In this document: positions 18,341-44,964 of the stretch, piece by piece
Position numbering within the stretch: the first letter of the stretch is position 1
Layout: each line of letters starts with the position of its first letter
Assembly: GCA_002269645.1 (NCBI GenBank)
Contig: NIVC01003412.1
Span: 1-64,000, forward strand
Length of the DNA stretch: 64,000 nt
Direction of reading: 5' to 3'
Source of the DNA: Macrostomum lignano
Lineage: Eukaryota
Position numbers and translations under genes: made by a program
Notes under the pieces: model-generated
Databases searched by the model: none
Seen by the model: the letters and a program-made list of their open reading frames with translations, nothing else
Told to the model about the DNA's origin: nothing

Positions 18341-18513
18341 CCATTGGTTTTCTAGGGGTTAAGCTTCTTTACATTATTTGTTCATTACAGATTCCGTGTA
18401 GATAATGCTACACATTGGGTGAATTGATGTACATTTGCACACTTCTACTGGCATATTGAATAGTTAAAATTTGTGTTTATAATTACATGTCGATTAAAAT
18501 AAGTCTACAAATA

Positions 18514-21817
<3,304 letters not shown>

Positions 21818-22304: not shown

Positions 22305-22612
22305 GACATAATAATAATCATATTTGATTACACCTGCCCTAATAGGCAGATTTGCAACCGACAGCTCAGCCGCAGCTATTGCGCGGCGCATCTGAAAGCT
22401 GCGTACGGCTGTTCAGTCCAAAGACTGGGGGGGGGGTCGCCACAAACAATTACCTCAGCTAATGCTGGCACCCATTTTACAGCTGGGTGAACTGAAGCAA
22501 TGCAGAGTTAAGTGTCTTGCTCAAGGACACAAACTGTTTCGAGTGGGATCAGGAATCGAACCCCCGAACTTTAAGTCGTGAGCCCGACGCTCTAACCACT
22601 AGGCTACAACCG
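22305..22612 (-). mobile_element. SINE family 1, copy 3 (near full length)
   Basis: tRNA-like head GGTTGTAGCCTAGTGGTTAGAGCG...GGTTCGATTCC, CORE-like body, ATT-rich tail. Confidence 0.85.
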
Positions 22613-25078
22613 CCTTCTGGCATATGAGGGCATGCAAAGTCGTCAAACCGACAATATATGGAGCAATAGTTTATATCGTGCCAACAAGGTTTAATGAGAT
22701 CATTAAACAAATAAAATTTTCGCCGAAAAATTGCGAATTATTCGTAGAGGGAACGGTTCGATTAGTTGTTTATAACCGAGGACTTATCAGTGACTTGCTT
22801 CTGTACAAAATTACGAGTATTAGTATTCTTATATACAGAGAGGTAAAAATAACAAATAAAACAATGACGGGACACAATATAAAGATAAACGGCTTTCCGT
22901 GCCAAAAATTATTGAGATCATCAAACAAATAGGATTGCGCCAAAAAATTAAATGAACCAGTTGAAGTATCTTGCTGTTTAAACCAAAGAGTCAACTTCCT
23001 CAGTAGCTGAATTATTCTCAATAAGACACTTCTTGGGTACGCCTAAGCCTCTTTATAAAGAAAGGGGCAATAAAAAATGAAATAAACACGGCGCCGGAAA
23101 CAGCAATAGTGACGTAAAGATAGACGGATTTGCGGCCAAATATTGGTGATGGAGGACGATAAAATGCATTTAGACCAATCCAGGAAGTTGCTTGACTTAC
23201 TGGCGAAGTTGCTGGCGAAGCACTCAAAACAGTCAATGCTGAGCTGCATTTTACAAACTGCTTTTTAATACGAGCGCTCAGCTGGGGAAATTTTATCAGC
23301 ACCAGCATTGCTGTGTCACATTCGCTAAACTCAATCTCAGCGGTGTTTTTTTCGCGCAAAGAGAATCGAACTGAGGCGCACGGACCTGTCGGTCGGGTCG
23401 AAACTCTGCAATTAGTGCAATTGGAGACTGAAGAAAAACAAGACTGTAGAATTTCATCTGTAAGCTATTAACAACTGTCTAAATGCTTACAAAAACTCTT
23501 TCGCTTTTGGAACAGGCTTCAATCCACATTCACCGCTATCCTGTCTGATTAGAGACAGAACTGAGGCATCGGCTGCACTGTAGAACATGCCGAGACGCAC
23601 TGGCTGGCTCAGGTTCAGAGGCCGTCTGTACGGGTGCACCGACAGTCTGGCTGTATCTGAAACCGTTTTGATGCTCACCTCTATTTTAAAGTAGCTCCGG
23701 AGATTAAAATCAAAAACAGATGCTGAGAGTCGCTACTTACTTGCAGCAATCAGACTGCGGATCTCAGACATGCTGGAGAAGCTGGCCAGCTGCGCATCGC
23801 CTCTGATGCTGGACATTGCGGCTGTTAAATTGGCTTTGACTTTGCTCACAGCTTAGCAGTTTCCGTTGAAGCTGAGCATGTCTCTGTGGCAGAGTCCAGG
23901 GAGAATGAGCAGGAGTCTCAACTTTACCTTGGGGGCAGATTGGTATCTCGGGTCCCAGCTGGCCTGCACCGTGAGAGGCAGCCTGAAATAGAGTATTGGT
24001 ACAGCGCTGAAAGTCCTACATGTACCATATTACTGTCCGCATATGTAACTATAAACAGCGTTCAAACTCCTGAAGTAAAAACCATTCGAGCTACCTTTTG
24101 ACCACATAACAAGTTATTGAATCGCCATTCCTGGAGAAACAGCTGCTGGTAACCCCCTGAGAACCTCCCTGGATGGCGCCAACCCTCCGTCTAAAGCATT
24201 GTAGAGTTAGCAGCTTTACTATTGACAACTTTAACACGATCTGAGCTCGTAGCAACATTTCAAATTACAAATACTGATCGATTACTATATTGCCAGCGAC
24301 TTACATTAGCTGTTCAGGTGCGACCAAAAACATTCCTTGAGTCACATTGAGTGTCCCTCCTTTGTATCTGATGACCAAATCTATCTGTTGCTTTCTATCC
24401 TTTGTTTGCGAGTCCATCGTAAGTCCTTGCAGGACAAGCTGCAGGTCCTTTTCAGTCACTGAACTTTCGATGCTCCATGAGCAGCGTCCGCTGAGCTGCC
24501 TGATGTCTGTCTCTTCTGAGTAGCTTGCAGTGAGCTCAACGTGCTGTTTTTGATCATCGGAAATAATTATCGATGACATCAGCTTTGGGTAGACATTACA
24601 GTAACGGGTGGCGGCTTGGCAACTGAAAATGCAGGTTTGCAGTATATAAAGCGTTTTTATAGCTAAGTTTTTACATGCGAGCGTACGTATATTCTAGCAG
24701 TATAATCACAAAACAAAAACGACAGTGTAGTGATTTTACATATCTAAATGGTTGTAAGTATTTTAGGAGTAAATCTTAGGCCTAGTTTACTGGCAAGAAA
24801 ACTTCCGCTTGTAAAGATCTCCAAATATACATGTGGTAGACTACTAGAAGTAGTAGGATAAAATAATGAACAAAAAATTAACAATTTTTTTTGCATGCGT
24901 CAAACCTATTTTTAGTGGTACCGGTAATATCACGAAAACAGCGAGTGACTATTCTATTGTTCAAAAAACCGATTCTCAACATCTAGTTTTAGAACTACCA
25001 AAAGTAGTAAATGTTAACCTGAATGCTACCCAAGTCTCAACTTTTCTATTTCTTTCTTCCTTAATGAGGTCATTTATG

Positions 25079-25574
25079 TTCCTCCGCCCTACGCAGGGCC
25101 CTGCTTGGACTCAACAGCAGGGACATCAGGGCGGTGACCATGCCCTCTTGGGTCATGGCTGTTTTGCCAGGCATCGTTACCTCCAGGAGAAAATCCGCAG
25201 TGAGGAATGCCCATTCTGCCTCTCCGGTGTCGAGAATGCGGATCACTTCATCTGTGAATGCCCCGCCTTTACTCAGGACAGGCTCACCTAACCCGGTTCA
25301 GGACAGGCCCCAAACCCGGACCTCTCCGACGTTTTCAGGCCCGAGAATCTCTGCCAGCTCGTCCGCTACCTAAGGGCTACCGGGCGAGCGACAATCCACC
25401 TCCTGGACTCTCCGGAGGGGGACCGCGCTGCGGACGCCGGCGCCACCGGAACTCCCTGCGCGACACCGCAGCACTAGCTGCCCGTGGTCGCCAGGGGTTA
25501 GCGAAATGGGCGGCAACGCCTCATCGCTGTTTCCGGACGCACGGAGCCCCCTGCAGCTAAGTCAAGTAAGTCAA
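25079..25574 (+). mobile_element. 5'-truncated LINE 3' end (I/R1/Loa-group-like)
   Basis: 13-bp TSD GAGGTCATTTATG (25066-78, 25575-87); GHGCF...CPFC...ENADHFICECPAF zinc-knuckle; (TAAGTCAAG)2 tail. Confidence 0.85.
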
Positions 25575-26456
25575 GAGGTCATTTATGAGGTCAAGAAGTT
25601 CCTTTCTTGACCTCATAAAAAACCGGTTTGGGCTCAAGGTCGACTAATTGCATTTAAATACAAACGAAAAGTCCGAGCTGAAATCTCAGACTCGAAGCAG
25701 CCTCGAGAGGACTTGAAAACATCCAAGAACTACGAGGCTAAATCTCTGAGAGAAGAACATGTATAGATACTGTTCGGTAAGCCTTTGTTGGAGTCTTTGT
25801 TCTTTTATTATTGAGAGTCTTGCTGTTGCCGGCCGTTGCTGATCAGTTGATTTCTACAGAGTTATTGAATTTGAAGCCTCCCTATTCCTAAGGGATTGGA
25901 TAGGATCTGCGGACCGATTCCGATACTCTTAAGGGATTATAGATTTGATTGATTTTGGTACCCTAGAGTAAGAGATAAGGGCACGTCACGGCTCTGATTC
26001 TGTTATTTCTAGAAGAAGACGCCCTTACTGGAGGACCTCGTCTTTGTTATAGAGTTGACTTATTATGATTTATGATTTGATTTCTGAACTCGATGAATGC
26101 ATTAACGTCGACGGATTAAATTGTTACCTTCATTAAAGTGCTCTCATATTCGACCGACTTAAGAAGTGACGAGCTCTACTACGAACCTGCTAGACAAAGA
26201 AGAGCAGCCCGCACTAGTAAGTGATCGCTGAATTCTGTTCCCTGGCTTGAGGTCCGGAAGTGGGAGTTTCGTGTGTTGAGATACTAGACTTATTTTTTCT
26301 CTCTCTTTCTTTCCCTCTCTCTCTAGTGTGCTAAAGCGAACTCTTTACTCTCTGGGAGCCGAAGGGAGGCCTGAATGCCTTTAGTCAACTGCTCTGACAA
26401 GTGTCTAATTGCAGACAGTCTCGTTCAGTGCATTACGCTCGTACTTATGGCTTTAA

Positions 26457-29021
26457 CCCTTAGATGCTGGGTGGCTAGCAGAGCTGACCATAGCCATAGA
26501 ATAGAAGGTGACGAGAAAAAAAATTGGTAGTCTATGGCCAGTGAGGCGCAGAATTGCAGCTCCTTTCCTGCCGAACATGGTCAGCTGAGCTGACCATGGA
26601 ATAAATAGCGCACTCACTCAGTCTGTAGCACTCTGTAGCGACCACTAGAGCAACTTTCATGTACTAACAATGGCACAGAAGAAAGATGCAGTTTATTGTT
26701 GAATTAATTTCGAACTATAAAGTTAAAGGGAAAGTTAAGGTTAAAGTTCAAGCAAAAGAAGATATTTGTCCAAAAGCAACAAAAAATTTATGATTTTGAG
26801 ACGCAACTACATGTACGCTCGTATAGTAGCATATAATAATACAGGGAACAATATTGTGGTAGAGTGCCGCAGTTGGACATTTAATTATTTTTGTTTAATT
26901 AAGACAAAAATAATTAACAATATTTTTGTTTTAAAATACTAATATTTTATTATTTTACTATATTTTTACTATTTTGTCTTAAAACCTCTATATTAAAAAT
27001 AAAGGTAAAAAATTAATAGTCAATGCCGAATACAAACGCGAATTATATAGTACGGCTGGTGAAAGGAGTTCTTTAATTCAGTGATTCACATGCCACCGTT
27101 CAAAGCAGGGACTTGGGCACAGTCCAGGTGCATTCGGACACGCACTGCAGCAGAACACGGTGCGCTTCGCAGTGCCGTTGCGGTAGCACACGCGGCATCG
27201 CTTCACCGGCCTCGGGCACGATTCCCTCGGAGGCAGCTTTGATGGAAAGTGCTGCTGAGCTGCGGCCGCCGCTGGTTGCCTAGCTGCCGTTCGCTGTCTT
27301 CCTGGTCCCGTGGAGTCAACCAGTAGGGTGATGTACAGCTCTCCAGGAATTTGAAGAACTGCAGCCGGCCACCGTGCTTTGAGTATACAACCCATGCATT
27401 GTGTACAAGCAGCAGGCAGAGATGAAACCCCAACTTATGAAACCACTTGTAGGTTTTGCGGCAGCTGTCGTACGGTTTCAGCATGGCATCGAGTCGGTCA
27501 ACGCCTCCCATGCAGCGGTTGTACAGCAGGTTCGAGGCGCTTTTCTGCACTTGCACAGCTTCACCATTCTTGCGAATTCGGTTCGTCGCTACTTTCTGAG
27601 CTGAGCCGTGGGTGTCGATCATGAAGAATGTTTTCAAGCCGCTTTCCTTGCGCTCCAGAATTTTCATGGCCAGCACTGGCAGCTTCCTCATGAAAACTAC
27701 GTCATTCAACGGAACCTGCTGACTGCGCAATGCCAACGGCACTCCACGGTCGGCTCGAACAGTTGCTGTCAGCAGTGTGCTGCGTTCGTACAGAAAAGTC
27801 GCAAGCCGTACTGAAGCAAACCACTTGTCGACGAAAAGGTGATAGCCGAAACCGAGCAAGTCCTTGCAAAGGTGCACTACGATTTTCTCGCTTAGAGACA
27901 GCTGGTCACAACCGAGGTCGTCGCCAAAATGAGAGTTCTCTTCAGCAGTCGAATGTACTAGAAAGTTATACAGGTAGCCAGATGCAGACTCACAGGCGCA
28001 GTACATTTTAATTCCAACTCTGGCTCTCTTCGATGGGATGTACTGCCTAAGCTGAAGGCGCCCCTTGTACAGAATCAGGGACTCGTCGACGCTGACCTGC
28101 TGCTCCGGCTGGTACACGTTCGCGCAGAGCTGCTGAGCCAGACGGAGCAGCGGCCGAATCTTGTGCAGTGGGTCGTTCGAGGCGGGTGCTCGTGCATCGT
28201 AGAAACGAAGGAAGGCCAGCAGCTGCTTGAATCGGTCAAGGGTCAAGCCATTGGGCGATTGAAAAAACGGAGTACTGTGAATGACACTGGTGCTCCAGTA
28301 ATCATGCAGTTCCGGCTTCCGTGAGATGCCCATGAACAGGTACATACCCAACAGCTTGGATATCTCACTGCGGTTTGTGTCCTTCCATGACTTCAGCAAG
28401 CTCGAAACATCTTCTCCATCATGTGTCGCCTGCTCATACTCAGCCCAAGCTTTTGCGTTTGTCCACTCCACGATCTTATCCAGCAGCTCATCGGTTAGAA
28501 ACAGTCGTAGAAAATATTGGATGTCTTCACGGTCTTCGGGAAGGACAATGCTGGGGTTTACACCCGAAATTCCAGTGAAACTGGGGCCGTCTTCAACAAT
28601 GTCTTCGCCTGGCTCCACAAACTGCCAATCGTCTTCTACTTCGCTGATGGTGACCGACTTAGACGACTCGGAGTTCTCCGCTATTCCAGCGTCCCTTTCG
28701 GAGTCGGAAGTCAACAGAATATCCATATTTGGATTGATTTGAATTACATGAATAGAATTGTACAGAATTTGGCACAGCCCTTAATATACTAAAACTGGAC
28801 TGTCTATGGCCAGTCTTGTACAGTTTTGATAAGCGTGTGTGCAACCCATTCCAAATGTACATTCTCCTTCAACCCTAGATTAGACCAGCGATGGCTGGCT
28901 TATCGGCAGGAGTGGCAGTGCAATTCAGTTCACTGAAAACTTGAAATAGTCTATGGTCAGCTCTGCTGACCATGCCGGCAGGAACGGAGCTTTCTATTTA
29001 GGAATTCAGGCTTGAAAAGGT
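26457..29021 (-). mobile_element. piggyBac element 2, 2565 bp
   Basis: TTAA-CCCTT at 26453-61 and AAGGG-TTAA at 29017-25; internal inverted repeat about 26549-26600 / 28947-28990; transposase ORF inside. Confidence 0.9.
27078..28726 (-). pseudogene. piggyBac transposase, one frameshift near 27335 ahead of the Cys-rich C-terminus
   Basis: VSVDESL, FVDKWF, GGVDRLD; CRVC...CSAC...LC..PCF..WH in the second frame. A single indel could be an assembly error. Confidence 0.85.
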
Positions 29022-30099
29022 TAATGTAAATCCTTAAGACGACACATTTAATCGATACCGTTTGAGAGGTATTCGAGATTTTATTGGCATGCCTCTTCAA
29101 GCTACATAGAGACAGACTGTTTTTAGGAATTCAAATTATGAATGCAATTCTTACCTGGGGCACATCAGCAGCTGAAGCACCACCAACGCAGCTGTTAAAG
29201 TCGGAAATTGTAAATTCAGCATAAGCACAAGTTGCCGCCACGGGTGCAAACTCGAATTTCGCAGTTAGAATACCTTTGACCCAACTCGTAAGTCACCAGT
29301 TCAAACTTGATTGTTGCAGAGGATTAATACACTAGAATAGTTTGATGCTGTTTCACTATTGCATTAAAATATAAGTTGCATAGCCTTACATACAGGCATC
29401 TATTTCAGGCTTAAATAGATTCACTCATTTTCATCAAACGTACAGAGCACCGAGCAGTATTGTTGAGGCTAAGCAAATGGAGCTTCATGAGTGCACACTG
29501 CGCTCGTGTGCATACTTTTTTGCACGGAATTTGGGTGGGTAGTCAGGTGCTTCGCTAGCATAAATAATTTTAGTACCTTTTTAGTTATGCGAAAAAATTA
29601 AAGTAATACTGCTTATTGTTGCTTCACAAATTAAGGATAAAACCTTTGTAAACTGTTCTGTTTCTAACCTGTTTTGCACCTGAGCACCTTACAACGTTTC
29701 TGCTTGAACAAGAAAGAGTAAGCTGAGTATTTTTAGGCCAAAAATATTTTAATTTCCAATTTTATAGTGCAATAAAATGGTGCTTTATTCAAAAACAGAA
29801 TTCTTGGATTAAATAAGGAGCAATATACGTACCGTACCTCCAAGGGTTAGTGTATAAAACAAATGGATTTCACGAAAAACTAAATGAAAGATTTAAATTA
29901 TTTGCTAATCAAGGACTCATCGCTGGCTTGTTCTTGAAATGATGGGAAATCCTTCATTGATAAAAACTTCTTGATTACGCTCCTGTATAAAGGTACAAGT
30001 ATTAGGTATGTTTATTCAGAAAGTGTCCATGAAAAATTAAATAAGATGCCTGTCTGGCGAAATATTGGTGACGGAAACGAAAAAACGCGTTTAAATGAA

Positions 30100-33000
30100 T
30101 CAAGTCTGTCTATCTGGTCTGTTAAAAAAACAGTAGCTACGAGCAGGAGGGCTACTCGTACTCGATGTCTCTCGATGCGACTCGACTTTGAGCTCGAGGA
30201 CTCCGGGTGCTGCATCGAGTCTCTCCAGCTTCTCCCTGACCCAGCTGATCTTCTCCTTGTCCTGCGTCTCCATGGTGACGCGTTTCTCTTTCTCGATCAT
30301 CTCCATCTGCCGCAGGCTGAGCTCCACATGTTCGCGGCAGTCGCTGTAATGAGCCAGAGTGAGCAGCTCCTCCAAGTCCGGGTCTCCAAGCAGCTGTTCA
30401 ATCCAATGATCGAATGCGATTGCAGGTGCCCGATTGCGGAGCAGCTCAGCTTGGAGACTCCAGCTCAGGCAGCGGAAGTTCACGTACAGGTGGGAGGAGA
30501 GAGGCTGCGACAGTCTGGCTGTGAACAGAGTCTGTGTGAACTCGGGAAGGAATGGGAAGCGAGGCGGAGAGTCACAGGGGAGGCAGAACCTCCACGCCCA
30601 GTCTGAGTCTACTGGCAGTTCTATCATACTACTCCCGTACCAGCTACTCTCTTCTCGAATATCTTTTGGCTTCAATCCTGACTCAACCTGATGTCTCTGC
30701 AGCTTCATCGCGAGTCTCTCAGCTTCCTCAGAGTCTCCAAACTTTAAATGCGCCATGGCAGTCATGCACAGGGCGGAGCACTTGCACCACTGCTGCTTAT
30801 GCAGAAGCCTGAGCTGCCTCATCAGGTTGTCTTTATCGCTCGATTCCGACTGCAGCTCGCTCACACACTGATGCACCACACTGTACACGTCTGCGAACTT
30901 GTAGTACATTTCTTGGTAGGCTCTTCCTTCCCTAATCCCCGTGACAACAGGAGGCGCTGTCAGGGGCAGCAGAGTGAATGGGTGAAAGTAGAACTTCTCT
31001 GACTGCAGAGGTCTCACGAGTCTCCTCAGCTGCTCGACCACTCCACCAATGTCGCTTCTCAGCTCAAAAAGTCTTTCCCGGAGCCTCGCCTTCGTGTTGT
31101 CGAAGTCGCCGCAGATTCCAGCATTCTTGAAGTAGAGCGGAGCGTCTTGCATGAAGAAGTGAGGCATGCACTCATTGGGTGAGCTGCTTGAGTCGATGAA
31201 GCTCAGCATCATGTCGAGAGACTCTTTCAGAAGAGCGATCAGATTGCGCGGTTGCCAAGCCTCAGTTTCAGAATCTGTGCCATGCTTCTTGAGCATTGTG
31301 AAGAGCAGAGTCTTTGCATGGTAGGTCTTGAGTCCAGGTGTGTCCAGATTGAGCAGCAAGTGTCTCTTGAAGATAAACTTGATGAGTGTGAACAGCTGGC
31401 CCTGGACTGTGCTCAGCTGTCTCATGATGTCTTTTTCTTGGAAGCTGAAGCTCACTCTGAGCTCGTTGGTCGAGCTCGGTCTGGTCGCCCGCACGAGGTG
31501 AACAAAACCACTAGATGGAAGTAGTTTTCTAACTCTGTCCTTACAGAAACTGCTGCAGCAATCGATCGCATGACACGTGTCCTGTGCAGACCTCACACCG
31601 CACATCGTGGCTGTCACTGCAGGTTGGCTGCCTGAGAGTGGAGTGAGCGGAGATTTGCTTTGTGACGAGTAAAAAATGATGGGTTGGTTTGAAACTGAAG
31701 ATTTTCTACTGGTTGGTTGGGAGTTTCGAGTATTTGACTAATACACATTTTACATACTTGCCAAAAAGGCACATTTTGTTGTTAGAAGTGCGACCACAAG
31801 CTGTGTGCTACAATGCATAGGCTAAAAGGGTCTCAACGAATATCACAAAATAAATTTACCTGGAAAATTTGATAGCTCGTAAGCTAAAAGCTCTAAAATA
31901 TTGCTTGACCCTAAGAAGTAACACTGGCAACCACGGCTGGTTTTATCGAGCCCCTCGAAACGGAGGTGCTTGATGAAATTGGTGCTGGTTCCGGCGTTTT
32001 GAAGCCACAGCGAAGGTCCAGAAATGGGATGACGACGTTCTGAAGTTTGCACCGATAGCCAATCTTGGGAAAAGTCATTGCATTTGGTCGACTGCCAGAC
32101 GCCATGCTATCTGAGAAGCCAGAACAGAAAAGCTACTCTCAGCTGAAGAATCTGTTTCAGCTGAGACGCAAAGCAGCCAAGTTCGAAATCACGCAACACT
32201 ACGCCTTCCACCACATGAAGCGAGAAGAGGGTGAAGAACGTGGTTGCATACGCAAGAAGACTGCGCCAAGCGGCTAAGCATTGTAGCTTCACGGATCTTG
32301 ACGTCCGCCTGAGAGACCATTTCATTTCCGGACTCCACAACAAGGAGCTGAGATAATCAAAAAGCTACTTATCGAGAAACTGGCGAACCTAACCCGATAA
32401 ATTATTTCAATCAATCAATCCCCTACATGGGTTTCGTGTTAGCAGTTACCTGCACGTCATCATTGAGATTCGGGCTAACATGGAGGAGTGCTCGCAGTGC
32501 GAGCATCTAAGCGTCATTAACCAGTATTTTGAGTCAGGAATTTTGTCTATGATAGCATTCTGTACGTAATGTGTAGGCTTAGCCTAGTTGTTGAGGGGGT
32601 TGTAGTCCAGCGGTCAGAGCGCCGGACTTACGACCTAAAGGTCGAAGGTTCGATTCGAGATCCCACTGGAACAATTTGTGTCCTTGAGCAAGACACTTAA
32701 CTCTGTACCAGGCTCCACCAGGTCGGGCTCCGGTGGCAGCGCCTTCAGGGCCGCGCAGTGCCGCCGGCAGGTGACCCGCCCGCGCTGTAGCTGCAGCGAG
32801 TTGCCTTCCACTTTGGTAACGGTCCAGGCCTCGCTCTCGAATGGGGTTTGGCCCTTCAGCGGGTTGAAGCGTTTCCTCAGCACCTGGTCGCCGACCGCGT
32901 AGTTTTGCTCTTTTGGTCTCCGAGCAGCGTCGGCGTGCCGCTTCATTGTCAGCTTCTGCTTGCGGTCATGCTCCCGCAGCTCCTTGTCGTTGATGTGCAC

Positions 33001-36000
33001 CCGCGCTGGAGGCCGCCGGCCGGGGACGCTGTTGCCCATAGCGCGGCCCATCAGCAGCTCTGCGGGGGCGCGCCCGGTTGTGGCGTGTGGCGCCGTCTGG
33101 TACGCCAGAATCCACTCGTCCAAAGCCTCGCGCCAGTTTCTGTTCTCCGCGATTGCGGCGCGGACGACCTTGTTGATCGATCTGTTCAGGCGCTCGGTCA
33201 TGCCGTTGGCCGCTGGGTAGAGCGGAGTGATGGAGTGAATTCCGAAGCTCCTGAGGAAGTCCTTGAACTGCGCCGACGAGAATGGAGGCCCATTGTCCGT
33301 AACGAGCTCCTCCGGGATGCCGAACCTGCAGAATGATTCCCGCAGCTTCGGGATGACTGCCTCCGCTGAAGTAGACTGCATGACTTGCACTTCGGGATAC
33401 CGAGAGTAGTGATCCACGCAGACGAGCAGCATCTTGTTCTGTACCGGACCGAGGAAGTCGGCGCCGATCGACAACCAGGCGCCCTTGGGGATGCTGGACG
33501 GCTGCAGTGGCGTCGCGCTGACTGTCGGCTTATGTGACGCCATGATGCAGCTGCGGCAACTGCTGACGGCCTTGTCCGCATCTGCGCTCATCTTTGGCCA
33601 CCAGACTTTGCTGCTCAGCCTGGCCAGCGTCTTCCGCAGTCCCAGGTGGCCGGCATGTGCGAGGCTCCCGGAGGCTGCTTGGCACCACAATCCTGTCCCG
33701 CCGAAGCAGCACCCCGTCCTCCTCAGCAAGCTCGTCTTGTAGTGCATACAGTGCCCTCAGCTCCGGGTGGCCGAGGTCCCACCTGGCTCCCTGGATGGCG
33801 GCGATTGCGGCTTTGATCAGCGGGTCAGCCTGCGAGTGTCGCCTAATGTCCTCTACAGTGAGCGCTGTCGGCACCGCGGCCTGCAGTACGGCACCGATGC
33901 AGGCGGAGTCCTGCTGTGCGTCTTTGCTGCGCCCGGACATCGCTAGCGGTTGTCGGCTGAGGATGCCCGCTGCGTTCTGAGGCCCTGGGCGGTACACCAA
34001 CTTGAAAGTCATGTGCTGAATCTGCAGAGCCATTCGCTCGACTCTAGGAGGCGGCCTCGACCCTGGCGCCAGCATGTTGACCAACGGCCTGTGGTCCGTG
34101 ATCACATCGAATCGGGGCGCCGTGCAGGTAGAATTGGAATCGGAGACATCCGAATTTCACTGCCAATGCCACTTTTCGGTCTGGGAGTTTCTGGACTCAA
34201 AATCGGAGAGCGTCCGACTGGCATAGGCCACTGGTCTTGAAGTGCCGTCTCCTCGCCGCTGCGCCAAGCGTTTGAGTATCCCCCGTGTTTTCGAATGCAA
34301 GCATGGAGTTTCCCAGAAATGATTTTCTTTTCTGCGTTGAGGAGAGATGTGAGCCACTGATTTTCTCTAGAGCGCCCACCCATTTTCCGGCCCCACGCGT
34401 CAGCCAGTACTCTCTCTGGATCTCTCCAACTCTCTTTCCCTTATCTGTACTCGTAAGTAGGCAAATGTACAGTTGCTGCCACCACCCCATGCAATGCGGT
34501 CTGGGTCGACAAACAATAAATAAATACATGTAACATCGCTTCGCCCTAATGCTGTTTTTGGGATTTTTCGTGCACTGCTAAATCATGCTTTGAACTTTTA
34601 CATGAGCTAGAGAAAATCAATGGCTCACAGGTTGCACATCTGGCTCAATTGGAGCATGTGTAATAAATTATTTTTATGCGGTATACATATAATAATAATA
34701 TGTATGCCTAAAAAGCCTCGAAGATTGTCATGAAATATTTTTACTGGAAAGTATGATGAGCTAAAGGCTCAAAAACATTTAACTTTACACTAAGAAGTAA
34801 CGCTTATTTACACACTTTCCAGTACCCCGTGCCCCGTGGACCCAGTGCCCCGCAGCAAGGCACCAATCAGGCAGTCAGGGCGGCTTCGGTTTATTTTGTT
34901 TGAAATTTTCCAAGTGAGAGCAGCGACACTTCAGCAGAGCCATGCCGCCTACCGTCAATCACCCAATCACCGCTGCAACCACTCTGCTACAATGGGAGCC
35001 TGTGAATTTAAACAAACCAATGGCCCGGCTCAGCCAGTTGTCATCAGAGTTTTCGCTTTTATTTTACCTGCCAGTTGTTCCATCACCGAAACCGACATTC
35101 GCAGTCAGAAGCTGCTGGAGGCTGGGCGCCAATCGGTAGCGAATGTAAAACTGAGCAAAGTTAATGGGCTTCCAGTTGCATGCTGATCTCAGCATTCTGT
35201 TGAACCCAGCCTCACTCACCTGCTCCTACTGCCACCTGTGCGTGGCCCTTTTTGACCTGCAATTGAGTGGCGTCTCTGCATTGCTGCCGATCTCTGTTGC
35301 AGCCACCTTCCAGATGGAGCTCTTGCCCAGCAGCCAGCACAGTCCAGTCAATGTCCGAGTCTGCAGCTGTCCTGCCGTTCACTTGCACCAGACTGTTGGC
35401 CCAGCCCTCTGCGTAGTTGCCTGTCATCCGCCTGCCATCCTGTGTGACGACTCGAGCGACTTCTTCAAGCCAGTCAGCCAGTCTCTGCTGACACTTTGCT
35501 CTCTGCTCGGTGAATCCTGCCTTGGTGAGCAGTCGATGCAGCTCCTCGCTCAGGCGCCTGTCTAGCTTGGAGCCGTCTGAGAGCCTGGAATGATCCAAGA
35601 TGCGTGTGGGTGACTTGCTCAGAGTTGGATGAACAAAACAAGCAGGAGACCTGAGAGTGCAGCTGCTGCAGCACTCAGTCCAACCCAATCTCAACCCTCC
35701 TGAGTTTCGCTGCAATTTCTGTCGCGAGCTGCCAGCCTGTTTGGAAAGCGCAATGTGGCAGTGAAATCCAAACCGGTCAGACTCACTGATAGAGGCCGAA
35801 TTGAAGCGTTGAGTGGCTGCCCGCCAGGCATCTGGGCTTCTGCAATGCGTGAATGAAAGGTTCACTTTCTGGATCGGGGGTTTGAGAATTCTGTGGTGGA
35901 AGTTTTAGAAAAGAAGTGCTTGTTTCTTGCATAATATAAAATACTTAAATATAAAATACTGCTTCATTTTATATTTCTCTAAATTCTGAATTCATCCCTT

Positions 36001-37039
36001 TTTATATTAAGATAAGATTTCGACCGTAACTAGGAGAGAAAGAATCGAAGAACCACTCCCACTTATTATTCTCCCACTTTTACCAGTTAGCTATAAAACA
36101 AAAAGATAACAGTTTCATTTAGAAATTAGTGGTCGAGCCATAGTGTGCTAAACTTGATGCATGTATTCCAAAATTGGCGAAACTCCTCACTTACTCCGTT
36201 CCAATAGGATCCAGCAGTCGCAGCACCTGCCACTGCTCAAATCGCTGTGCCACCTGCGCACACGTCAGATCCCGGCAGTCTCGATGACTCGAATCCGCTT
36301 CTTTGTCCATCAGAGCCTTGGCTGCTCGCAGGTGACCGGCTTCGCACGCTCGCGACAGAACAGTTCGACTCCGACTGTCTTCAGCATGCACTGAGGCATT
36401 GAAATCGATCAGTTTCTCAATGAGCTCGTGATAACCTGCATCAGCTGCCAGCATGAGAGCAGTGGCACCAGTGCTGTCTGGCAAATCTACATGCTTTGAG
36501 CTGACTCGCTCATCATTGATCAGTGTGACAGCAAGAGCAACATGTCTTTGAGAGATGGAGAGACGAAACAGCTGTGTGATGCGAGCTGGCTGCATTCGAG
36601 AGAGAGTGTCGCTGAGAACAGAGTTCATGCCTTCGATGGCCGTTGCTGCAGTGAAGCTAAAAATGCTATTGGACTGGAAGAGCCAGTCAGGCTCGAGGCC
36701 GAGGGAAGCAACATCTTCGTGAAGACGAGAGCAAGCCGCGACTGCACAGTGGAAACGGAGATTCGCACTTTGATCTGGACTTGAGAGACAAGAGAGGAGG
36801 AACTTGACGACTTCTAAGTGACCATTTCTTGCAGCATATTCCGCAGCCTCAATGCAGCACTGGTCTCTGTTTGTTTCGCCAGAGACTGTCGACACAAGAA
36901 ACTTGACGACTTCTAATTTACCGTATTTTGCAGCCGATTTGGCAGCGTTGATGCAGCAGTTATCTCTTTTTGTTTGTTCAGCGATTATGTGCACGAGAAA
37001 CTTGACGACTTCCAACTGCAGTCCATTGGCTTGCAGCAT
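30100..37039 (-). CDS. Ankyrin-repeat / cGAS-like (Mab-21) nucleotidyltransferase fusion, 3 exons, about 998 aa
   Basis: Exons 37039-36195, 35839-35220, 31631-30100 (2997 nt, phases 2 and 1, GT-AG, in frame); ankyrin motifs; GNYAEG...DSDID; third Asp in QDTCHAI; LRVSFSFQE and KTYHAKTLLF. The start codon is tentative. Confidence 0.8.
31940..32395 (+). mobile_element. Ty3/Gypsy gag-like fragment, frameshifted
   Basis: Remnant AYARRLRQAAKHCSFTDLDVRLRDHFISGLHNKELR. Confidence 0.6.
32595..32704 (+). mobile_element. SINE family 1, copy 4 (5' half)
   Basis: GGGGGTTGTAGTCCAGCGGTCAGAGCG...GGTTCGATTC...GTGTCCTTGAGCAAGACACTTAACTC. Confidence 0.85.
32705..34330 (-). mobile_element. Ty3/Gypsy pol fragment (RNase H, H2C2 zinc-binding region, integrase core), frameshifted
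   Basis: RPVAYASRTLS, ITDHRPL, YRPGPQN, HAGHLG...CRSC, DFLGP, TDNGPPF, NGMTERLNR. Confidence 0.9.
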
Positions 37040-37440
37040 ATTTGGCAGCGTTGATACAGCAGTGATCTCTGTTTGTTTGTTCAGCAACTTTCGGCACGAG
37101 AAATTTTACGACTTCTAATTTACCGTATTTTGCAGCCGATTTGGCAGCGTTGATACAGCAGTGATCTCTTTTTGTTTGTCCAGCGATTATGTGCACGAGA
37201 AACTTGACGACTTCCAACTGCAGTCCATTGGCTTGCAGCCGATTTGGCAGCGTTGATGCAGCAGTGATCTCTTTTTGTTTGTCCAGCGATTATGTGCACG
37301 AGAAACTTGACGACATCCAACTGCAGTCCATTGGCTTGCAGCATATTTGGCAGCGTTGATGCAGCAGTGATCTCTTTTTGTTTGTTCAGCGACTGTGTGC
37401 ACGAGAAACTTGACGACTTCTAACTGACCATGTTTTGCAG
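36850..37440 (-). repeat. Tandem ankyrin-coding units of about 100 bp, three carrying a +4-nt lesion
   Basis: Repeated GTCGTCAAGTTTCTCGTG and ATCAACGCTGCCAAA; variant GCAAGCCAATGGACTGCAGTTGGAA (25 nt) versus in-frame GCAAAATACGGTAAATTAGAA (21 nt). Confidence 0.8.
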
Positions 37441-37673
37441 CAAGATTTGAAGTGTTTTTGCAAATTAGATATGTTTTCTCCCTGCTGAAGATTTAGATAA
37501 TGTCTAACATTTTCCTTGGTTTGCTGTGGAACTAGAAGATAAATATTTTTCCGGTCTATGTGTGTAGTGTTTGAATTTTGCAAGTGCAGAGAGAGGGAAC
37601 AAAGGGCGTCGCTTTGCAGCTGTAATTTTTAAACGAATTTTGAAGAATGTTATGAATCCTTCTTATGATAATT

Positions 37674-37790
37674 GGCTGCTGTCAGAGTGGCAGATGTCAG
37701 TCGCGGCTGCTGTCAGAGTGGCAGATGTCAGTCGCGGCTGCTGTCAGAGTGGCAGGTGTCAGTCGCGGCTGCTGTCAGAGTGGCAGGTGT
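37674..37790 (+). repeat. 31-bp tandem repeat, about 4 copies
   Basis: GGCTGCTGTCAGAGTGGCAGATGTCAGTCGC starts at 37674, 37705, 37736, 37767. Confidence 0.9.
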
Positions 37791-38299
37791 TTCAAAGGCT
37801 TGTACAGCCGGTTGCCAGAAAGATTTTACCGCCTTATGTCTCAGCTGCTCATCTTTTTGCAGTCTCTGGCGAGCGCTGACCACAACAGCCTTATCAATAG
37901 TAACTTATCTTCATTGCATGAGAGCTGAATTTGCCCTCTGAGCTCTCCAACCCCCAGCATGGCAACAGAGGCTGCGGCTGCAACGGCCACCCCAGCTGTA
38001 CTTGATGAGGCTGAGAGCACTCATTGTGCCTCAGTGCAGGCTGAGATCTGTAAACGTATTTAATAGCTTACTGAGCGGTGTAAAATGCTGCTCAGACTCT
38101 CACCTGTACTCAGCGTGTTTTGGTCTATTTAAAGCAAAGCAATGAATTGCTTGAAATTGCATCAGTTGGGTGAGTTATTGATTGTGATTGATTGTGAACG
38201 ATACATCATATCTAAATCAATCCAGAAAGTCAATTGACTTACGGCACTCTTGAGTTTCAGTTTCTGTCGAAGCCGCCAAATCAGTCAATACACCTCATT

Positions 38300-38702
38300 T
38301 TTAGCATCCTGTTTGCTAGAACCGCTTCCAACGGATTCATTTCTTGCATTCTGTTTTTCAGAACCGATTCCAACGGATTCATTTCTTGCATTCTGTTTTC
38401 CAGAACCGATTCCAACGGATTCATTTCTTGCATTCTGTTTTCCAGAACCGATTCCAACGGATTCATTTCTTGCATTCTGTTTTCCAGAACCGATTCCAAC
38501 GGATTCATTTCTTGCATTCTGTTTTCCAGAACCGATTCCAACGGATTCATTTCTTGCATTCTGTTTTCCAGAACCGATTCCAACGGATTCATTTCTTGCA
38601 TTCTGTTTTCCAGAACCGATTCCAACGGATTCATTTCTTGCATTCTGATTTCCAGAACCGCTTCCAACGGATTCATTTCTTGCATTATGTTTGCTAGAAC
38701 CG
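38300..38702 (+). repeat. 42-bp tandem repeat, about 9 copies
   Basis: TCTGTTTTCCAGAACCGATTCCAACGGATTCATTTCTTGCAT; open in several frames. Confidence 0.95.
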
Positions 38703-38799
38703 CCTCTTGTAAATTGTAACATCTACACACGGATTGGATGGCCCATCGACCTTTTAAGCGAAGGATTCTGATTTTTCAATCAGATGACTATAATAATGA

Positions 38800-39850
38800 C
38801 TATGGTGACTCGACTATAATTAATATCAGTGGCGTTGACACAGTAGCAGGTGATGCTGTGTCAGATGGTTTAGTAATCGTTGAAATGAAGTTAGCAGCCC
38901 TTAGCAACAGTTCTGAAATTGCTGAAATGACAGCCCGAGTATTGCAGCTTGTGAGCTCACGCGCAGTGCTTCTGCTCTCTGGAAAACTTATGAGAACGAA
39001 CATTGAACTGCTACAGTTACTGAACTCGACAGACGCTTTGTCTGATGCATCAACTTTCAGGGTTGAGCACGGACCTGACACTGCAGCTGAACCACTGAAA
39101 GACAAGATGATGCTTAAAGTTTTAGGATGCATTTTAATATAAATAAAAACTAAGACAGCAGCCATGTTCAATGCTGACTCACACGAACCCTTTAGCTGTG
39201 GCAACCGGCTTCAATTCACACGCACCAAAACCGTTTCTTTTAGGAGAGAGCACTGAGGCATTGGCTGCACTGTAGAACATGCCGAGCCGCACTGGGCTGC
39301 TCAAGTTCTCAAGTTCAGAGGCCGTCTGCACGGGTTCAACGAGAGTCTGGCTGTGTCTGAAAGCGTTTTGTTGCTCACTTTTATAATAAAATAGACAGGG
39401 AGATGGAGATTAAAAACACATTCTGCTGAGACACCGCTCACTTGCACTAATGAGACTGCAAATATGACATGTTGGAGAAGCTGTCACAGCTGTCACAGAC
39501 GCTGTCACATTCACAGCGTAGCAGTTTCAGTTGAAGCTGAGCAATGTCTCAGTGAGCAATGTCTCAGTGAGCAATGTCTCAGTGAGCAATGTCTCAATGG
39601 CAGAGTCCAGGGAGAATGAGCAGGAGTCTCAGCTTGACTTGAGCGGCACGTTGATACCTTGAGTCCCAGCTTGCCTCCACCGTGAGCGGGAACCTAAAAT
39701 AGCAATGTAATTTTATTTTCTCAATTTTCGGAACACAATTACTTTGGTCGAGTGGAGACCGTAGCACAACTTCCAGGTGCTCGGTGACCTGAGCGCCGTT
39801 ATGCCCGAGAGATACGACCGACAATGAACTAGAAAGATGCATCTAGATAT
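38800..39850 (-). pseudogene. Receptor copy C, partial and disrupted
   Basis: Homologues of exons 3-5 present. The lectin exon is broken by a 15-bp repeat expansion (39540-39600) that introduces stops, and by a deletion. No signal or CUB exon before copy D ends at 40075. Confidence 0.75.
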
Positions 39851-40074
39851 AGCTCACTCAATAGAGTCATCCTATCTTTCTGTTAAATAAAGCTTTCAAT
39901 AAACTGTTTAAATTTTGTGTTATTTTAATCTTCAAAAAAAATCTGGGATACATTATTACCAAAACTATTATTGAATTCATGAACAAAATTTCAAGAAACT
40001 AAAACACATTCACACAAACATTCAAGTTCTCACTTACATTGAATTTGCGTGGTATGCAAACAACAATCCAGCAG

Positions 40075-43000
40075 TTACTGGAATCGAAGACGTAACGACA
40101 TTACTTCTAATGCATATCTTGCTTTGCTGAGGTGGAAACTTTTACAGCTTTCGGTGGCTAACTTAATTATATAATTTTTCAACACGAATAATGCAATGCA
40201 AAATTTTTGTGGATGAGTGTAGCTCCAGCGCTGAGTCAAAACTGTAAAACTAGCCATCCAGTGGCGCAGCAGGTTGCCAATCAATGCGCCGAATGACGCA
40301 TCTGGTAGTGCATCGAGTGATGCATCGGGCGGGGCATCAGGTAGTTCATCGGGAGGCTCATCGATTTGTACATCATTTGGAGCATCCGATTGCGCATTGA
40401 TTGGTGAATTCGGTGGCATAACATCCAGTGGAACACCTGGTGGTGGTGCATCAAGTGGCTCATTGAGCTGTGCATCATGTGGCGCATCCAGTGGTGCATC
40501 GAGTGGCTCATCTGGTGGCTCATCTGGTGGCTCGTCGGGTGGCTCGTCGCGAAGGGCATCAAGTGGCGCATCCGGTGGCTCATCGGATGGCTCGTCGGGT
40601 GGCTCATCGGCTGGCTCGTCGGGTGGCTCATCGGCTGGCTCGTCGGGTGGCTCATCGGCTGGCTCGTCGGGTGGCTCGTCGGATGGCTCATCAGGTGGCT
40701 CATCGGCTGGTTCATCAGGTGGCTCATCGGCTGGTTCATCAGGTGGCTCATCGGCTGGCTCATCAGGTGGCTCATCGGCTGGTTCATCAGGTGGCTCATC
40801 GGCTGGCTCATCAGGTGGCTCATCGGCTGGTTCATCAGGTGGCTCATCGGGTAGAGCATCAAGTGGCGCATCCAGTGGTGCAACTGGTGGTTCATCGGGT
40901 GGATCATCGCGTAGAGCATCAAGTGGATCATCCAGTGGTGCATCGGCTGGTTCATCAGGTGGCTCATCGGGTGGCTCATCAGGTGGTTCATCGGCTGGCT
41001 CATCAGGTGGATCATCGCGTAGAGCATCAAGTGGCTCATCCAGTGGTGCATCGGCAGGTTCACCAGGTGGCTCATCGGCTGGTTCATCGCGTAGAGCATC
41101 AAGTGGCGCATTCAATGGCGCATCAATTGGCCAACTATAAATGGCGTTTTGGGCCATACTGCGCTGATCGTATGGGCAGCTCTCGTTTAAAAGGTAGCAG
41201 TTTTCTGAAGTACTCGTTGAAGCCTTGCTTGCATTACCTACTGAAGCGCCACCTGAAATCCCAGTTTCATGCTTAATCAAAGGTTGGAAAACATTTTTCA
41301 GTGGTTCAATATCAGCATTTCCTTTCTCAACAAACTGCTCAGAACTATTTAATGAGGTGTAACGTCTTTTGCAGACGATAATTATCACAATGGTTATAAT
41401 TACAAGGACCACCAGAATCGGACAGGAAACTCCAACAATTACAGCCAAGTTACTTGCTGGAGCTTCAGTTGAGGTATGGTCTGGTGCTGATTGCACTGTT
41501 TCTGATAATAACATTCTGCCACTTGATTCAATAGAATTTATCGGCTCTTTAGCGGTCCATTTCTGTCGCGGCGTTTTCAGAACTTTCCAAATGACCGTCT
41601 TAGCGAAACAGCTGGCTGGATAGGGTCCCATAGTGCCTCCTCTCTCAGGAAACTTTACAAGAAATGGAATCTGGCTGCTACAGCTTTTCGATTTGATTTC
41701 CGCTCTGTCCGAAGCATCCACATTCATAGTCACGCACGGACCTGTCGCGCCGTTTGACTCTCTGTAGTTATTTAAAGGTGGTTCCAGGTTAACTCGCAGC
41801 TTATTTTTCATAGCCTCTTCTGTTTTACAGAAGATGAAACGGAATTACTCACACAAAACCCTCAGATCTGAGAACAGGCTTCAATCCACATTCACCGCTA
41901 TCCTGTCTGATTAGAGAGGTCACTGAGGCATCGGCTGCACTGTAGAACATGCCGAGACGCACTGGCTGGCTCAGGCTCAGGGGCCGTCTGTACGGGTGCA
42001 ACGACAGTCTGGCTGTGTCTGAAACCGTTTTGACGCTCATTTTTATAATAAAGTAGCCATGGAAATTGAAAACAAATTATCAGAGTCGTTACTCACTTGC
42101 AGCAATCAGACTGCGGATTTCAGTCATGCTGGAGAAGCTGGCCAGCTCAGCATCGCCTCTGATGCTGGACATTGCGACTGTTAAATTGGCTTTGACTTTG
42201 CTCACAGCGTAGCAGTTTCCGTTAAAGCTGAGCATGTCTCTGTGGCAGAGTCCAGGGAGAATCAGCAGGAGTCTCAGCTTTACCTGGGGGGCACGTTGGT
42301 ACCTCGGATCCCAGCTTGCCTCCACCGTGAGCGGGAACCTAAAATAGTAATGTGATTTTTGTTTACCAATTGTCGGAACACAATTATTTTGGTCGAGTGG
42401 AGACCGTAGCGCAAAGTCATAGTGCTTGTTGACCTGAACGCCTTTATGCCCGAGAGATTTGACCGACATTGAACTAGAAAGCTCCTAGAATTATTGATTA
42501 ACTTTAACCATTGTATATTTTTATACTCGTAGTCAAGGTAAAACATCTTAGATCTACCAATATATTTTAACGTCTTGTTATTTGTACCTGAGGACATCTA
42601 GATTATACTCGTACGAAACGACCAACTAACTACCGTAACTGTATTTCCCGCAACTAGCGCTTCTAAATAGGTTAAGCAAAACAAAGCTGACCGCGAGGTC
42701 GAACTTAGTGAGTAGTACGCCGGTTTCAGTGTTAGTTTTTAAATTTGTAATTAATTTAATTGTTATGCTGTATTTTCTCACAGTATTGTCAATAGCGAGT
42801 CTGAGAAAGAATAATGTTCATAGCAGACTGAATTGCCATGGAACTTTCATGGAACAACCGTGGAATTACCACGGATTTTCGACGGAATTACCGTTTGATG
42901 TTTTCAGAGTGTTGCTACTTTTCAATTTCTATAGCTATTTGATCCTGTTATTATTTCAATCGCACCCCGTGTGAGCTATATCCATGCTCGTGCTCTATGT

Positions 43001-44154
43001 CAGTGAAATGGGCATGACTGTTTGCCTTCTTGAGTTGATCTCCATTACATTTTTTCTCAGTCTGAAAATTTTCAAGCACCAAAGGATCTCTCTATCTCAT
43101 TGACGAACATGGATTTTTGCGGTTGGACGCGAAACATCCCAGCAGTCACGGGAATTTCTCCTCCGCTGTAGCTGATGACCAACTTTGCTGATCCAGTTTG
43201 ATTCTCTCCCGATTGTAAGCGTAAGTCGGTGTTGTCGGCAGAACCAATGAGCAACCCCTGTAAGACAAGCTGCATGTCTTCTTGAGCAGCAGAATTCTTA
43301 ATTATCCACCTGCATCTCCTGTAGCTCGTATCCAACTCGTCGGTCAGCACTCTCGGAATGATGCTCTCGTCTCGGTGGAAAAAATCGTCAACTGTTATCA
43401 ATAATGTGAGCCCATTCACGCAGTAGTGGTTGGCGCCTTGGCAACTGGAAATGCGGCGAAAACGAAGACACTGACTGTAATAAACAGTGACACAAACTGG
43501 TGAACCGGTCAAAAATATTGACCAAATCATCGCTTTTCAAGGGCGGGTGCTAGAAATTAAGAAAATGGGTTTACTCGAGAAAGCTTGACTGCAACTGTTC
43601 GTACACTGCTGTCTGAGCGTTTGTGTAAAAAATAGCTGCTCCCATAGTCTTATAGTTATCAATGCTGGCAAGGGGGGCCGTAGCCCAGCGGTAGCGCAGC
43701 TGCTCTGGTGTGCCGCGACCCAGGCTCGATTCCAAGTGCAGCCACATTAATTTGGGGCTGGATTGGAATTTCGGCTTGGCTCGCCTGTGCAATTAACGGC
43801 CTTGAGAGCCAACCCCCCAAGAGGCAGTGAAATGTACATGCCTAAGAATTAATAAAGTTAGGGCCGCTGTACACTCCTGTGTGAGTGTGTGCCTGCGTAA
43901 CGTATCCGCGCGCTTGTATGCCTGCTCAGGGGAGTCGGCGAAATGGGCAGTAATGCCTCTCGCCGGTTGTGTGCCTATGTCGCCTAAAGTGCGCCAGGGT
44001 GCACACAATCCCCCTGCCTCTAATAAAAAATAAAAAAAATCAATGCTGGCACATCTAAAGTCAAGATTTAACGGATTAAAAGGCAAACTTACACTGATAC
44101 AGTCCGACAGAAAATCGTCACAGTTGCCAATGTCAGCAGGCTGACAGCACGCAT
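40075..44154 (-). CDS. Receptor copy D, 5 exons, about 840 aa, with a long (DEPP/DAPL)n cytoplasmic tail
   Basis: Exons 44154-44093, 43474-43109, 42338-42097, 42018-41853, 41761-40075; in frame (exon-2 donor GTTCGT is weak); TM LAVIVGVSCPILVVLVIITIVIIIVC followed by KRR. Confidence 0.78.
43671..44038 (+). mobile_element. tRNA-derived SINE family 2, full length with A-rich tail
   Basis: 13-bp TSD ATCAATGCTGGCA (43658-70, 44039-51); A-box TAGCCCAGCGG, B-box GGCTCGATTCC; absent from the homologous intron of copy A (about 21700). Confidence 0.9.
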
Positions 44155-44654
44155 ATCTTTTGATAATCAGATTGTACTTTGTCTAAAAACTAGAAAAAAC
44201 AAAAAGCCTTCAAGCTTCTTTCAGCTCAAAATGTCTTCTTTTATTTTGAATACGAGCGCACTGAATACAAGTGTACGCGTGATAAATTCTCTTCTCACCT
44301 CAGGCAGAGTGAGCGAGTTTACATTTATGCCAACACGTAAAGACACGCGCACAGAAGTGAGAGCAAGTGCAGTGCAAGTACATCTGTACAGTAGACTTTT
44401 GCCTACGTGCCTGATAATAACAAACGAAGTTCCCCTATTGTTGGTTTGGTTTAGAATTTCTCTAAGAAACTGCGAGGACAGAAGCCGCCACCAGTGATTG
44501 TGAGAGATAAAAGGGCTATTAGCTAAACGTTCGCTGTTTGTGGTTTTTTATAATCCTGAATTCTATTTAATTCGTTACAGATCTCTTTTAACTTTTTATC
44601 TTTTCAAAGATAAAACGTTTGCTGAGTTCTTCTCAGAAGTCTTCTTATGAGGAC

Positions 44655-44964
44655 ATAGTAATAACCATAATTGATTAAACCTACCCTAATGGGTAGATTT
44701 GCAACCGACAGCTCAGCCGCAGCTATTGCGCGGCGCATCTGAAGGCTTGCGTAGGGCGGCTGTTCACAGTTCAAGGACTGGGGGGTCGCCACACACACTC
44801 AATCACCCCAGCTAATACTGGCACCCATTTTACAGCTGGGTGAACTGAAGCAATGCAGAGTTAAGTGTTCTGCTCAAGGACACAAATTATTCCAGTGAGA
44901 TCGGGAATCAAAGCCCTGACCTTCGAGTCGTGAGTCCGACGCTCTAACGACTAGGCTACAACCC
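44655..44964 (-). mobile_element. SINE family 1, copy 5
   Basis: Same position and flanks as the 22305 copy, inside a duplicated block. Confidence 0.85.

Follow-up and report, generated by a model that had tools for sequence, protein, structure and literature searches.

The 64,000-nt stretch of Macrostomum lignano DNA analysed here (hereafter the window; contig NIVC01003412.1 of assembly GCA_002269645.1, positions 1..64,000) holds on its minus strand a gene in which ankyrin repeats (ANK) are joined to a cGAS-like nucleotidyltransferase (NTase). By its sequence, the locus is a paralog of the M. lignano family of ankyrin-repeat cGAS-like receptors (ANK-cGLRs). It follows the exon plan of the family, and damage at its 5′ end, in a micro-exon and at the catalytic motif makes it probable that this copy is degenerating.

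Exon structure and the transposon-filled intron

Three minus-strand open reading frames (ORFs) cover the locus, at 36191..37087 (298 aa), 35212..35865 (217 aa) and 30100..31617 (505 aa). A reading of the letters that preceded this analysis (hereafter the original prediction) had joined them as three exons. With its junctions, segments of 845, 620 and 1532 nt do combine in frame into a 998-aa chain, that is, 998 codons and one terminal stop. The first junction has the bases GA^gtaagt at the donor (intron start 36194; the caret marks the exon boundary) and cattgcag^A at the acceptor (exon start 35839), and the second has G^gtgagt (intron start 35219) and tctcag^GC (exon start 31631). The placing of ankyrin repeats and a cGAS-like NTase in one gene was also borne out, because about 35 annotated paralogs share this architecture and its splice sites.

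The division into three exons was not borne out. Five paralog loci were retrieved for comparison and three proteins were mapped fully onto their DNA; the full structures of P0017 and P0013 were left out. P0009 and P0002 have four coding exons: the ANK exon comes first, next a micro-exon measuring 42 or 54 nt, then one of 362 or 365 nt and finally one of approximately 1.5–1.6 kb. Guided by these paralogs, the window copy likewise reads as four exons, with a spliced coding sequence of 2.8 kb that has no internal stop and a product of 928 aa. The middle ORF contains an additional intron of 210 nt (intron 2, 35786..35577; GTGAGT...CTCTCAG), which the paralogs remove. We take this intron to be real because the linker of the 998-aa model is approximately 70–80 aa longer than that of any paralog, the tblastn alignments of the paralogs leave 35839..35615 uncovered, and the paralog genes splice the stretch out. 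The “linker” of approximately 70 aa in the original prediction is thus intron 2, which is in frame and open by chance; since its length is a multiple of three and it is open, the 998-aa reading stays in frame. The 998-aa gene model is an intron-retained reading from which the family N-terminus is absent. Two introns of the paralog P0017 were also noted. The first (L002, ~6870..6965) is apparently of the GC-AG type (AT^GCAAGT...TTGCAG), and the second, 84 nt long and open in frame, is retained by the near-identical annotated paralog P0014.

Exon 1, as modelled, spans 36195..37039 (minus strand, as are all parts of the gene), from the first usable ATG at 37039 to the GA^gtaagt donor in phase 2. 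It encodes two or three N-terminal ANK-like units, a helical region and canonical ankyrin repeats. Tandem ANK repeats were recognised in it by Pfam (Ank_2, E 2e-21; Ank, E 6e-16; Ank_4, E 9e-12), it is 64–74% identical to the ANK regions of the paralogs, and the position and phase of its donor are the same as in P0002 and P0009. Intron 1 (35840..36194, 355 nt) runs from gtaagt to cattgcag, and its acceptor CATTGCAG^AAGCCC is the same in the P0002 gene. Micro-exon 2 (35787..35839) is 53 nt long, compared with 54 nt in P0002. Exon 3 (35220..35576) encodes the spine helices and the NTase N-lobe and is 77–80% identical to the paralogs. It carries the G352-N353 motif (35421..35416), in which the window copy has AAC where the paralogs have AGC (Ser), and the catalytic acids D374 and D376 (35355..35347). 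Exon 4 (30100..31631) encodes the rest of the NTase core, with the third catalytic acid D436 (31581..31579), followed by the Mab-21 C-lobe and a helical tail of approximately 230 aa. It contains the motif RVSFSFQEK, is 80–85% identical to the paralogs and ends in the stop codon TGA (30102..30100). Approximately 85 nt 3′ of the stop, the letters AATAAA (30011..30016) can be read on the same strand as a candidate polyadenylation signal.

Intron 3 (31632..35219) is 3,588 nt long, lies in phase 1 and has the ends gtgagt...tctcag. In the paralogs, the sites of the last intron are GAGCAG^GT(G/A)AGTGA...CTGCAG^GCAGCC, in phase 1 as in the window. The donor GAGCAG^GTGAGTGA and the acceptor CAG^GCAGCC are common to the window and the paralogs, and the paralog proteins run uninterrupted over the site (HAQVAVGAG^SQPAVTAT). 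On this comparison, the joining of the exons over the 3.6-kb intron goes far beyond what chance would give. The intron at this site measures 17,111 nt in P0009, 500 nt in P0026 and 359 nt in P0002, and approximately 154–156 nt in an ANK-less paralog in the window (see below). The window intron resembles the paralog intron at its two ends alone, over 44 nt and 66 nt, and the interior is transposon-derived. Taken together, the sequences indicate that intron 3 is real, conserved in position across the family and repeatedly invaded.

The original prediction had filled this intron with Gypsy gag and pol fragments in opposite orientations and a short interspersed element (SINE). The pol fragments and the SINE were confirmed. 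A Ty3/Gypsy-type RNase H fragment lies at 34157..34357 on the minus strand (Pfam RT_RNaseH and RT_RNaseH_2, E ~4e-5), with its frame broken relative to the neighbouring pieces. An integrase ORF of 370 aa follows at 32635..33747 (minus strand; Integrase_H2C2, E 7e-13; rve, E 9e-11), overlapped by an ORF with the “TDHRPL” connection between RNase H and integrase (33530..34105, minus strand). These pieces have the orientation of the host gene and follow the expected order, RNase H and then integrase, and the GC content of the integrase region is 58% versus ~47–50% in the flanks. The gag in opposite orientation found no Pfam support: plus-strand segments at 31977..32353 look gag-like by eye only, and no reverse transcriptase, protease or gag domain was detected in intron 3 by Pfam in stop-to-stop segments at E values up to 10. 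The Ty3/Gypsy content reads as a 5′-truncated fragment. Abutting the integrase fragment is the truncated head of a tRNA-derived SINE, ~110 nt long (32594..32705, plus strand), with an A box GTAGYCNAGTGGT and a B box GGTTCGATTC. Four further copies in the window are 78–85% identical, and the consensus GTAGCCnAGTGGTTAGAGCG...GGTTCGATTC is common to all five. ARAGORN found no tRNA in 29000..38500 and did not fold the SINE head as one.

The cGAS-like nucleotidyltransferase and its paralogs

Window exon 4 matched the Pfam model Mab-21_C with E 5e-5 and 23.8 bits, just under the cut-off of 24.1 bits, which three paralogs passed (24.9–29.8 bits). PF03281 (Mab-21) gave no match in exon 4, the middle ORF received no Pfam call of any kind, and phmmer, run with the non-ANK part on PDB sequences, returned nothing useful. 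A profile of the family, made from the alignment with eight relatives described below and searched against all PDB sequences, matched only cGAS and one cGLR1 (best E 0.0015). The same profile retrieved 562 relatives at E ≤ 1e-3 from 1.84 billion representative proteins, 84 of them at E ≤ 1e-30, and all ten distant relatives sampled carry both PF03281 and PF20266 (Mab-21_C), with profile E values of 1e-10 to 1e-13. When the non-ANK part was aligned with eight relatives, G53-S54, S74-D75-I76-D77 and D137 were invariant, and the family motif ELRVSFSFQEK was found to correspond to WRLSFSHxEK of cGAS. In an alignment of 46 sequences, the distant relatives among them, conservation is at least 90% at each of G53, S54, D75, D77 and D137. 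The window copy keeps D374, D376 and D436, whose aligned columns are conserved at the same level of at least 90% among sequences that include bona fide Mab-21 proteins.

AlphaFold2, given the 46-sequence alignment, was used to model the NTase-plus-tail region of the paralog P0002 (84% identity to the window), with a predicted local distance difference test score (pLDDT) of 91.1 and a predicted template modelling score (pTM) of 0.92. Among the top 50 PDB matches found with this model by Foldseek, 49 are cGAS and one is MB21D2 (probability 1.00, E down to 9e-8), with ~350–400 aligned columns and a TM-score of ~0.5 on the target. This model supersedes a run on an 8-sequence alignment, in which the NTase core had a pLDDT of 59 and Foldseek gave weak matches to MAB21L1 and cGAS. 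The conserved acids are placed on the predicted palm strands E75-81 and E135-144. The cGAS-like fold is therefore predicted with high confidence, for the NTase-plus-tail of P0002 rather than for the full protein of the window. According to this model and the alignments, the family is a genuine cGAS-like (cGLR) NTase with the catalytic signature GS/DxD/D intact in the family.

In its layout, the family has ANK repeats, then the NTase and then a helical domain of ~230 residues. It shares with vertebrate cGAS (PDB 4K9B, 6EDC) and human MB21D2 (7LT1) the bilobed NTase with its Mab-21 C-lobe, the positions of GS, DxD and the third Asp, and the motif R-x-S-F-S-x-x-E-K. It differs from them in sequence (13–17% identity) and in the extra ANK and helical-tail extensions. 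The spacer between GS and DxD is ~20 residues in the family and about 12 residues in cGAS. The NTase core is basic, with an isoelectric point of ~9.0. In the survey of Li et al., a high isoelectric point goes with nucleic-acid-sensing cGLRs (PMC9980059), and the value is only a hint of nucleic-acid sensing here.

A protein search with the 998-aa model found ~35 M. lignano proteins with the NTase region of the family (BOX15_Mlig... entries of GCA_002269645.1; UniProt A0A1I8...). Many of the M. lignano matches cover 96% of the query at 44–72% identity, and the NTase region is 55–84% identical across these paralogs. Outside Macrostomum, the model matched only generic ankyrin proteins. No protein more than 82% identical was found in this search, and the product of the exon-4 ORF is not on record; the locus therefore seems to be an unannotated extra copy. 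The relatives at E ≤ 1e-30 form 84 clusters at 50% identity, and all six strong matches that were checked come from M. lignano. Pairwise ratios of nonsynonymous to synonymous divergence (dN/dS) in the family are 0.3–0.8. By these counts M. lignano carries a very large cGLR-like family, and the dN/dS ratios suggest fast birth-and-death evolution.

The paralogs P0002 (PAA63680.1), P0009 (PAA68676.1) and P0007 (PAA67649.1) share with the window copy the domain order, the four-exon plan and the splice sites, and their NTase is 80–84% identical. The common order is ANK-like 33-aa units, canonical ANK, a short linker, the cGAS-like NTase and the helical tail. The window copy differs from these paralogs in that it lacks the family start and the first units, has frame-breaking 103-nt units, a micro-exon of 53 rather than 54 nt and GN rather than GS, and carries another transposon load in intron 3. 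An ANK-less cGLR-like gene of the same NTase family lies elsewhere in the window, on the plus strand, in two exons (12068..12425 and 12582..13852; 542 aa). Its product is 29% identical to the NTase region of the ANK-cGLR with GS, SDID and the third Asp intact, and its intron occupies the same phase-1 position as the transposon-filled intron 3. It differs in having no ankyrin exon, an intron of 156 nt and another C-terminal tail.

Further arrangements were seen in individual paralogs. P0122 (PAA59752.1, 1099 aa) is annotated with a cGLR, then ANK and then a caspase domain (Peptidase_C14, E 3e-25), and P0008 (PAA66964.1, 1185 aa) with ANK, then a cGLR and then a protein kinase (E 8e-49). Both are known as annotated models only, and if these gene models are right, the two would be single-chain sensor-effector proteins. 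At the P0026 locus (L004; NIVC01001654.1), the exon-4 region is present a second time, at 36281..37589, ~450 nt 3′ of the last exon of P0026, with ~90% DNA identity to window exon 4. This arrangement suggests that members of the family have been duplicated locally in tandem.

Fusions of ANK to cGLRs were presented in the original prediction as a known class, and the literature agrees. Table S2 of Li et al. 2023 lists two members of this family, PAA68676.1 and PAA67649.1, as cGLRs with Ank_2 (bioRxiv 10.1101/2023.02.22.529553; PMC9980059), and the same authors describe ANK or TPR modules in some cGLRs (PMC9980059). Two cloned M. lignano cGLR domains were part of their Table S3 screen, #89, the NTase domain of PAA86972.1 (a protein annotated with Ank_2), and #90 from PAA45980.1. 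Their main text mentions no M. lignano enzyme by name, and this holds for its 15 active cGLRs as well (PMC9980059). Apart from Li et al. and a review, our search for literature on flatworm or Macrostomum cGLRs found no such work, and no paper devoted to the family. The ANK-cGLR class and the paralog family are thus already catalogued, though uncharacterised, and the locus itself adds a member. Li et al. 2023 also describe cGLRs of Stylophora pistillata with ankyrin repeats or with death domains, which are similar in the fusion of a cGAS-like NTase to accessory domains. In ANK-cGLRs of other invertebrates, the ankyrin repeats are presumed to bind ligands or partner proteins. The comparison of these proteins with the M. 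lignano family covers the shared domains. The M. lignano family differs from the other invertebrate ANK-cGLRs in its long, possibly TPR-like helical tail and in its Cys-Cys-containing 33-aa units, the number of which varies.

Probable degeneration of the window copy and competing readings

Upstream of exon 1, at 37040..37486 on the minus strand, lies a decayed array of ankyrin-like 33-aa repeats with units of 103, 103, 99 and 103 nt instead of 99 nt (TRF: period 103, 4.9 copies). A recurrent 10-nt insertion together with a 6-nt loss shifts the frame by +1 in every 103-nt unit, and tblastn alignments of the paralogs over the array hop between frames -1, -2, -3 and -1. A further frameshift occurs at ~37470, in the region homologous to the family N-terminus. 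No ATG matching the family start (MGQN.S, MDQ., MSQ.) was found in the upstream region. The ATG at 37039, from which the original prediction began the protein, is merely the first ATG 3′ of this frame-broken array and not the start of the family. Removal of the excess by splicing was considered and rejected, because 4 nt cannot be an intron and there are stops in all three frames.

The second lesion is in the micro-exon, where ATTC-GGCC in the window aligns with ATTCAGGTC in P0002 and shows a 1-nt deletion. The family-type acceptor of intron 2 is ttccag^GCTCTC, with the first exon base at 35584, 8 nt upstream of the acceptor that starts exon 3 at 35576. When the window micro-exon is joined to this family acceptor, the frame is broken and a TAG follows after 7 codons. 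Only two routes keep the frame, namely use of the AG that lies 8 nt further downstream (928 aa) and retention of intron 2 (998 aa). The third lesion lies in the catalytic motif: the h-G-[GS] motif reads GN in the window copy, at a Ser that is invariant in eight of eight relatives and at least 90% conserved among the 46 sequences. At positions invariant in 26 paralogs, the window copy has 11 private changes, compared with a median of 3; they include G224S, G247E and G257D, which replace three glycines of the ankyrin region, as well as S353N and G592C. The broken array, the deletion in the micro-exon and the change of GS to GN give no support to the intact enzyme implied by the “hidden” gene of the original prediction.

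We regard the window copy as probably a recently or partially degenerating member of the family. Degeneration is proposed because the array and start are frame-broken, the micro-exon has a deletion, the catalytic Ser is Asn and three ankyrin-region glycines are replaced. Since 928 codons are still open and exon 4 is under purifying selection, such damage must be recent or partial. Several observations weigh against degeneration. The number of private changes is high and not the highest (P0019 has 17 and P0031 has 13), and at silent sites the window copy has diverged furthest. Apart from the lesions, the remaining 928 codons are open. The terminal-branch dN/dS of exon 4 is ~0.30 (dN 0.050, dS 0.167; Nei-Gojobori, three-point decomposition with L003 and L002) and that of the ANK region is 0.40–0.44, no higher than the 0.35–0.80 of the family itself, and these values fit selection over most of the history of the copy. 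Other annotated paralogs begin within the ANK region or lack N-terminal units, and a short N-terminus therefore need not be lethal. The in-frame retention of intron 2 in annotated P0014 (compared with P0017) means that a 998-aa isoform would not be absurd.

The same observations lend some weight to a functional gene, in which an intact, N-terminally short ANK-cGLR is made from ATG 37039 through the downstream acceptor or with intron 2 retained. Such a protein, tentatively a ligand-gated cyclic-nucleotide synthase or a non-catalytic regulator, is the main rival, though less likely. The open frame of 928 or 998 codons, the dN/dS of about 0.3–0.45, the retention of D374, D376 and D436, the AATAAA after the stop and the variation among paralogs from zero to nine N-terminal units are what it would lead one to expect. 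It has to accommodate, however, a decayed leader of ~450 nt upstream with short ORFs such as M-V-S-stop, a family-type acceptor that leads to a premature stop, the change of GS to GN with the loss of conserved Gly residues, and the failure to find an annotated product. That the ankyrin and NTase parts are expressed separately, for example through an NTase-only transcript from an alternative first exon, is very improbable. The annotation of P0026 gives an NTase-only protein whose first exon is another one, 27 kb upstream, and the ANK-less gene at 12068..13852 is a natural example of a cGLR without ankyrin; yet the splice sites by which ANK exon, micro-exon and NTase exon are linked here are shared by the mapped paralog genes, and both parts are present in most annotated paralogs. 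A chance juxtaposition of in-frame ORFs or an assembly artefact, with no gene at all, has nothing more in its favour than that indel errors can occur in repeats in general. It conflicts with the 75–85% protein identity to paralogs over ~850 collinear residues and with the conserved intron ends. Moreover, three units that have otherwise diverged carry the same 10-nt insertion, which is not typical of a sequencing error. We consider this last reading effectively refuted by the paralog matches, the collinearity and the shared exon plan.

The locus has the four-exon plan of the family, and its intron 3 appears to have been inflated to 3.6 kb by the Ty3/Gypsy pol fragment and the tRNA-derived SINE. 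The original prediction had put forward a protein-sensing or autoinhibited cyclic-nucleotide synthase, and this is a hypothesis here as well. The intact members of the family would, by homology, be pattern-recognition enzymes, in which the ANK module may bind or gate a ligand and mediate recognition or autoinhibition, and the cGAS-like core (GS...DxD...D) may make a nucleotide second messenger on ligand engagement. In the window copy, N353 would be expected to impair catalysis. The value of the locus is mainly one of annotation, as a correctly structured, probably decaying paralog of a family that has so far consisted of “hypothetical proteins” and rows in supplementary tables. It would also illustrate birth-and-death turnover through unequal crossing-over in the ANK array, the use of one conserved intron as a transposon sink and the point loss of a catalytic Ser. 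The wider expansion of M. lignano cGLRs, with its fusions to ANK, caspase and kinase domains, is more interesting than the locus. A bolder idea is that the window copy is a live gene tolerating its micro-exon frameshift, by the alternative acceptor or an “exitron”-like insert of 70 aa, within a repertoire of at least 84 M. lignano clusters that forms a protein-sensing, single-chain sensor-effector immune system; this is unlikely. If true, cGLR cores would be wired to ANK arrays of variable number, while some annotated models link them straight to caspase or kinase domains, and all this in a phylum from which cGLRs are otherwise said to be missing.

Other features of the window

Three transposase ORFs were found, at 27203..28726 (minus strand), 16038..16976 (plus strand) and 7768..8889 (minus strand). 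Two of these transposases contain DDE_Tnp_1_7 (PiggyBac-type; E 8e-70 and 3e-47) and one contains DDE_3 and HTH domains (Tc1/mariner-like). The ORF at 27203..28726 lies just 1.4 kb 3′ of the stop codon of the ANK-cGLR gene. Just upstream of that gene are two tandem repeats, one at 38295..38702 (42-nt unit, 9.7 copies, 96% match) and one at 37674..37790 (31-nt unit, 3.8 copies). Strong GC/AT skew (up to ±0.36) was seen at 1..6000, 20001..22000, 52001..54000 and 56001..60000, with a GC fraction of 0.33 at 20–22 kb, and these blocks are probably satellite or low-complexity sequence.

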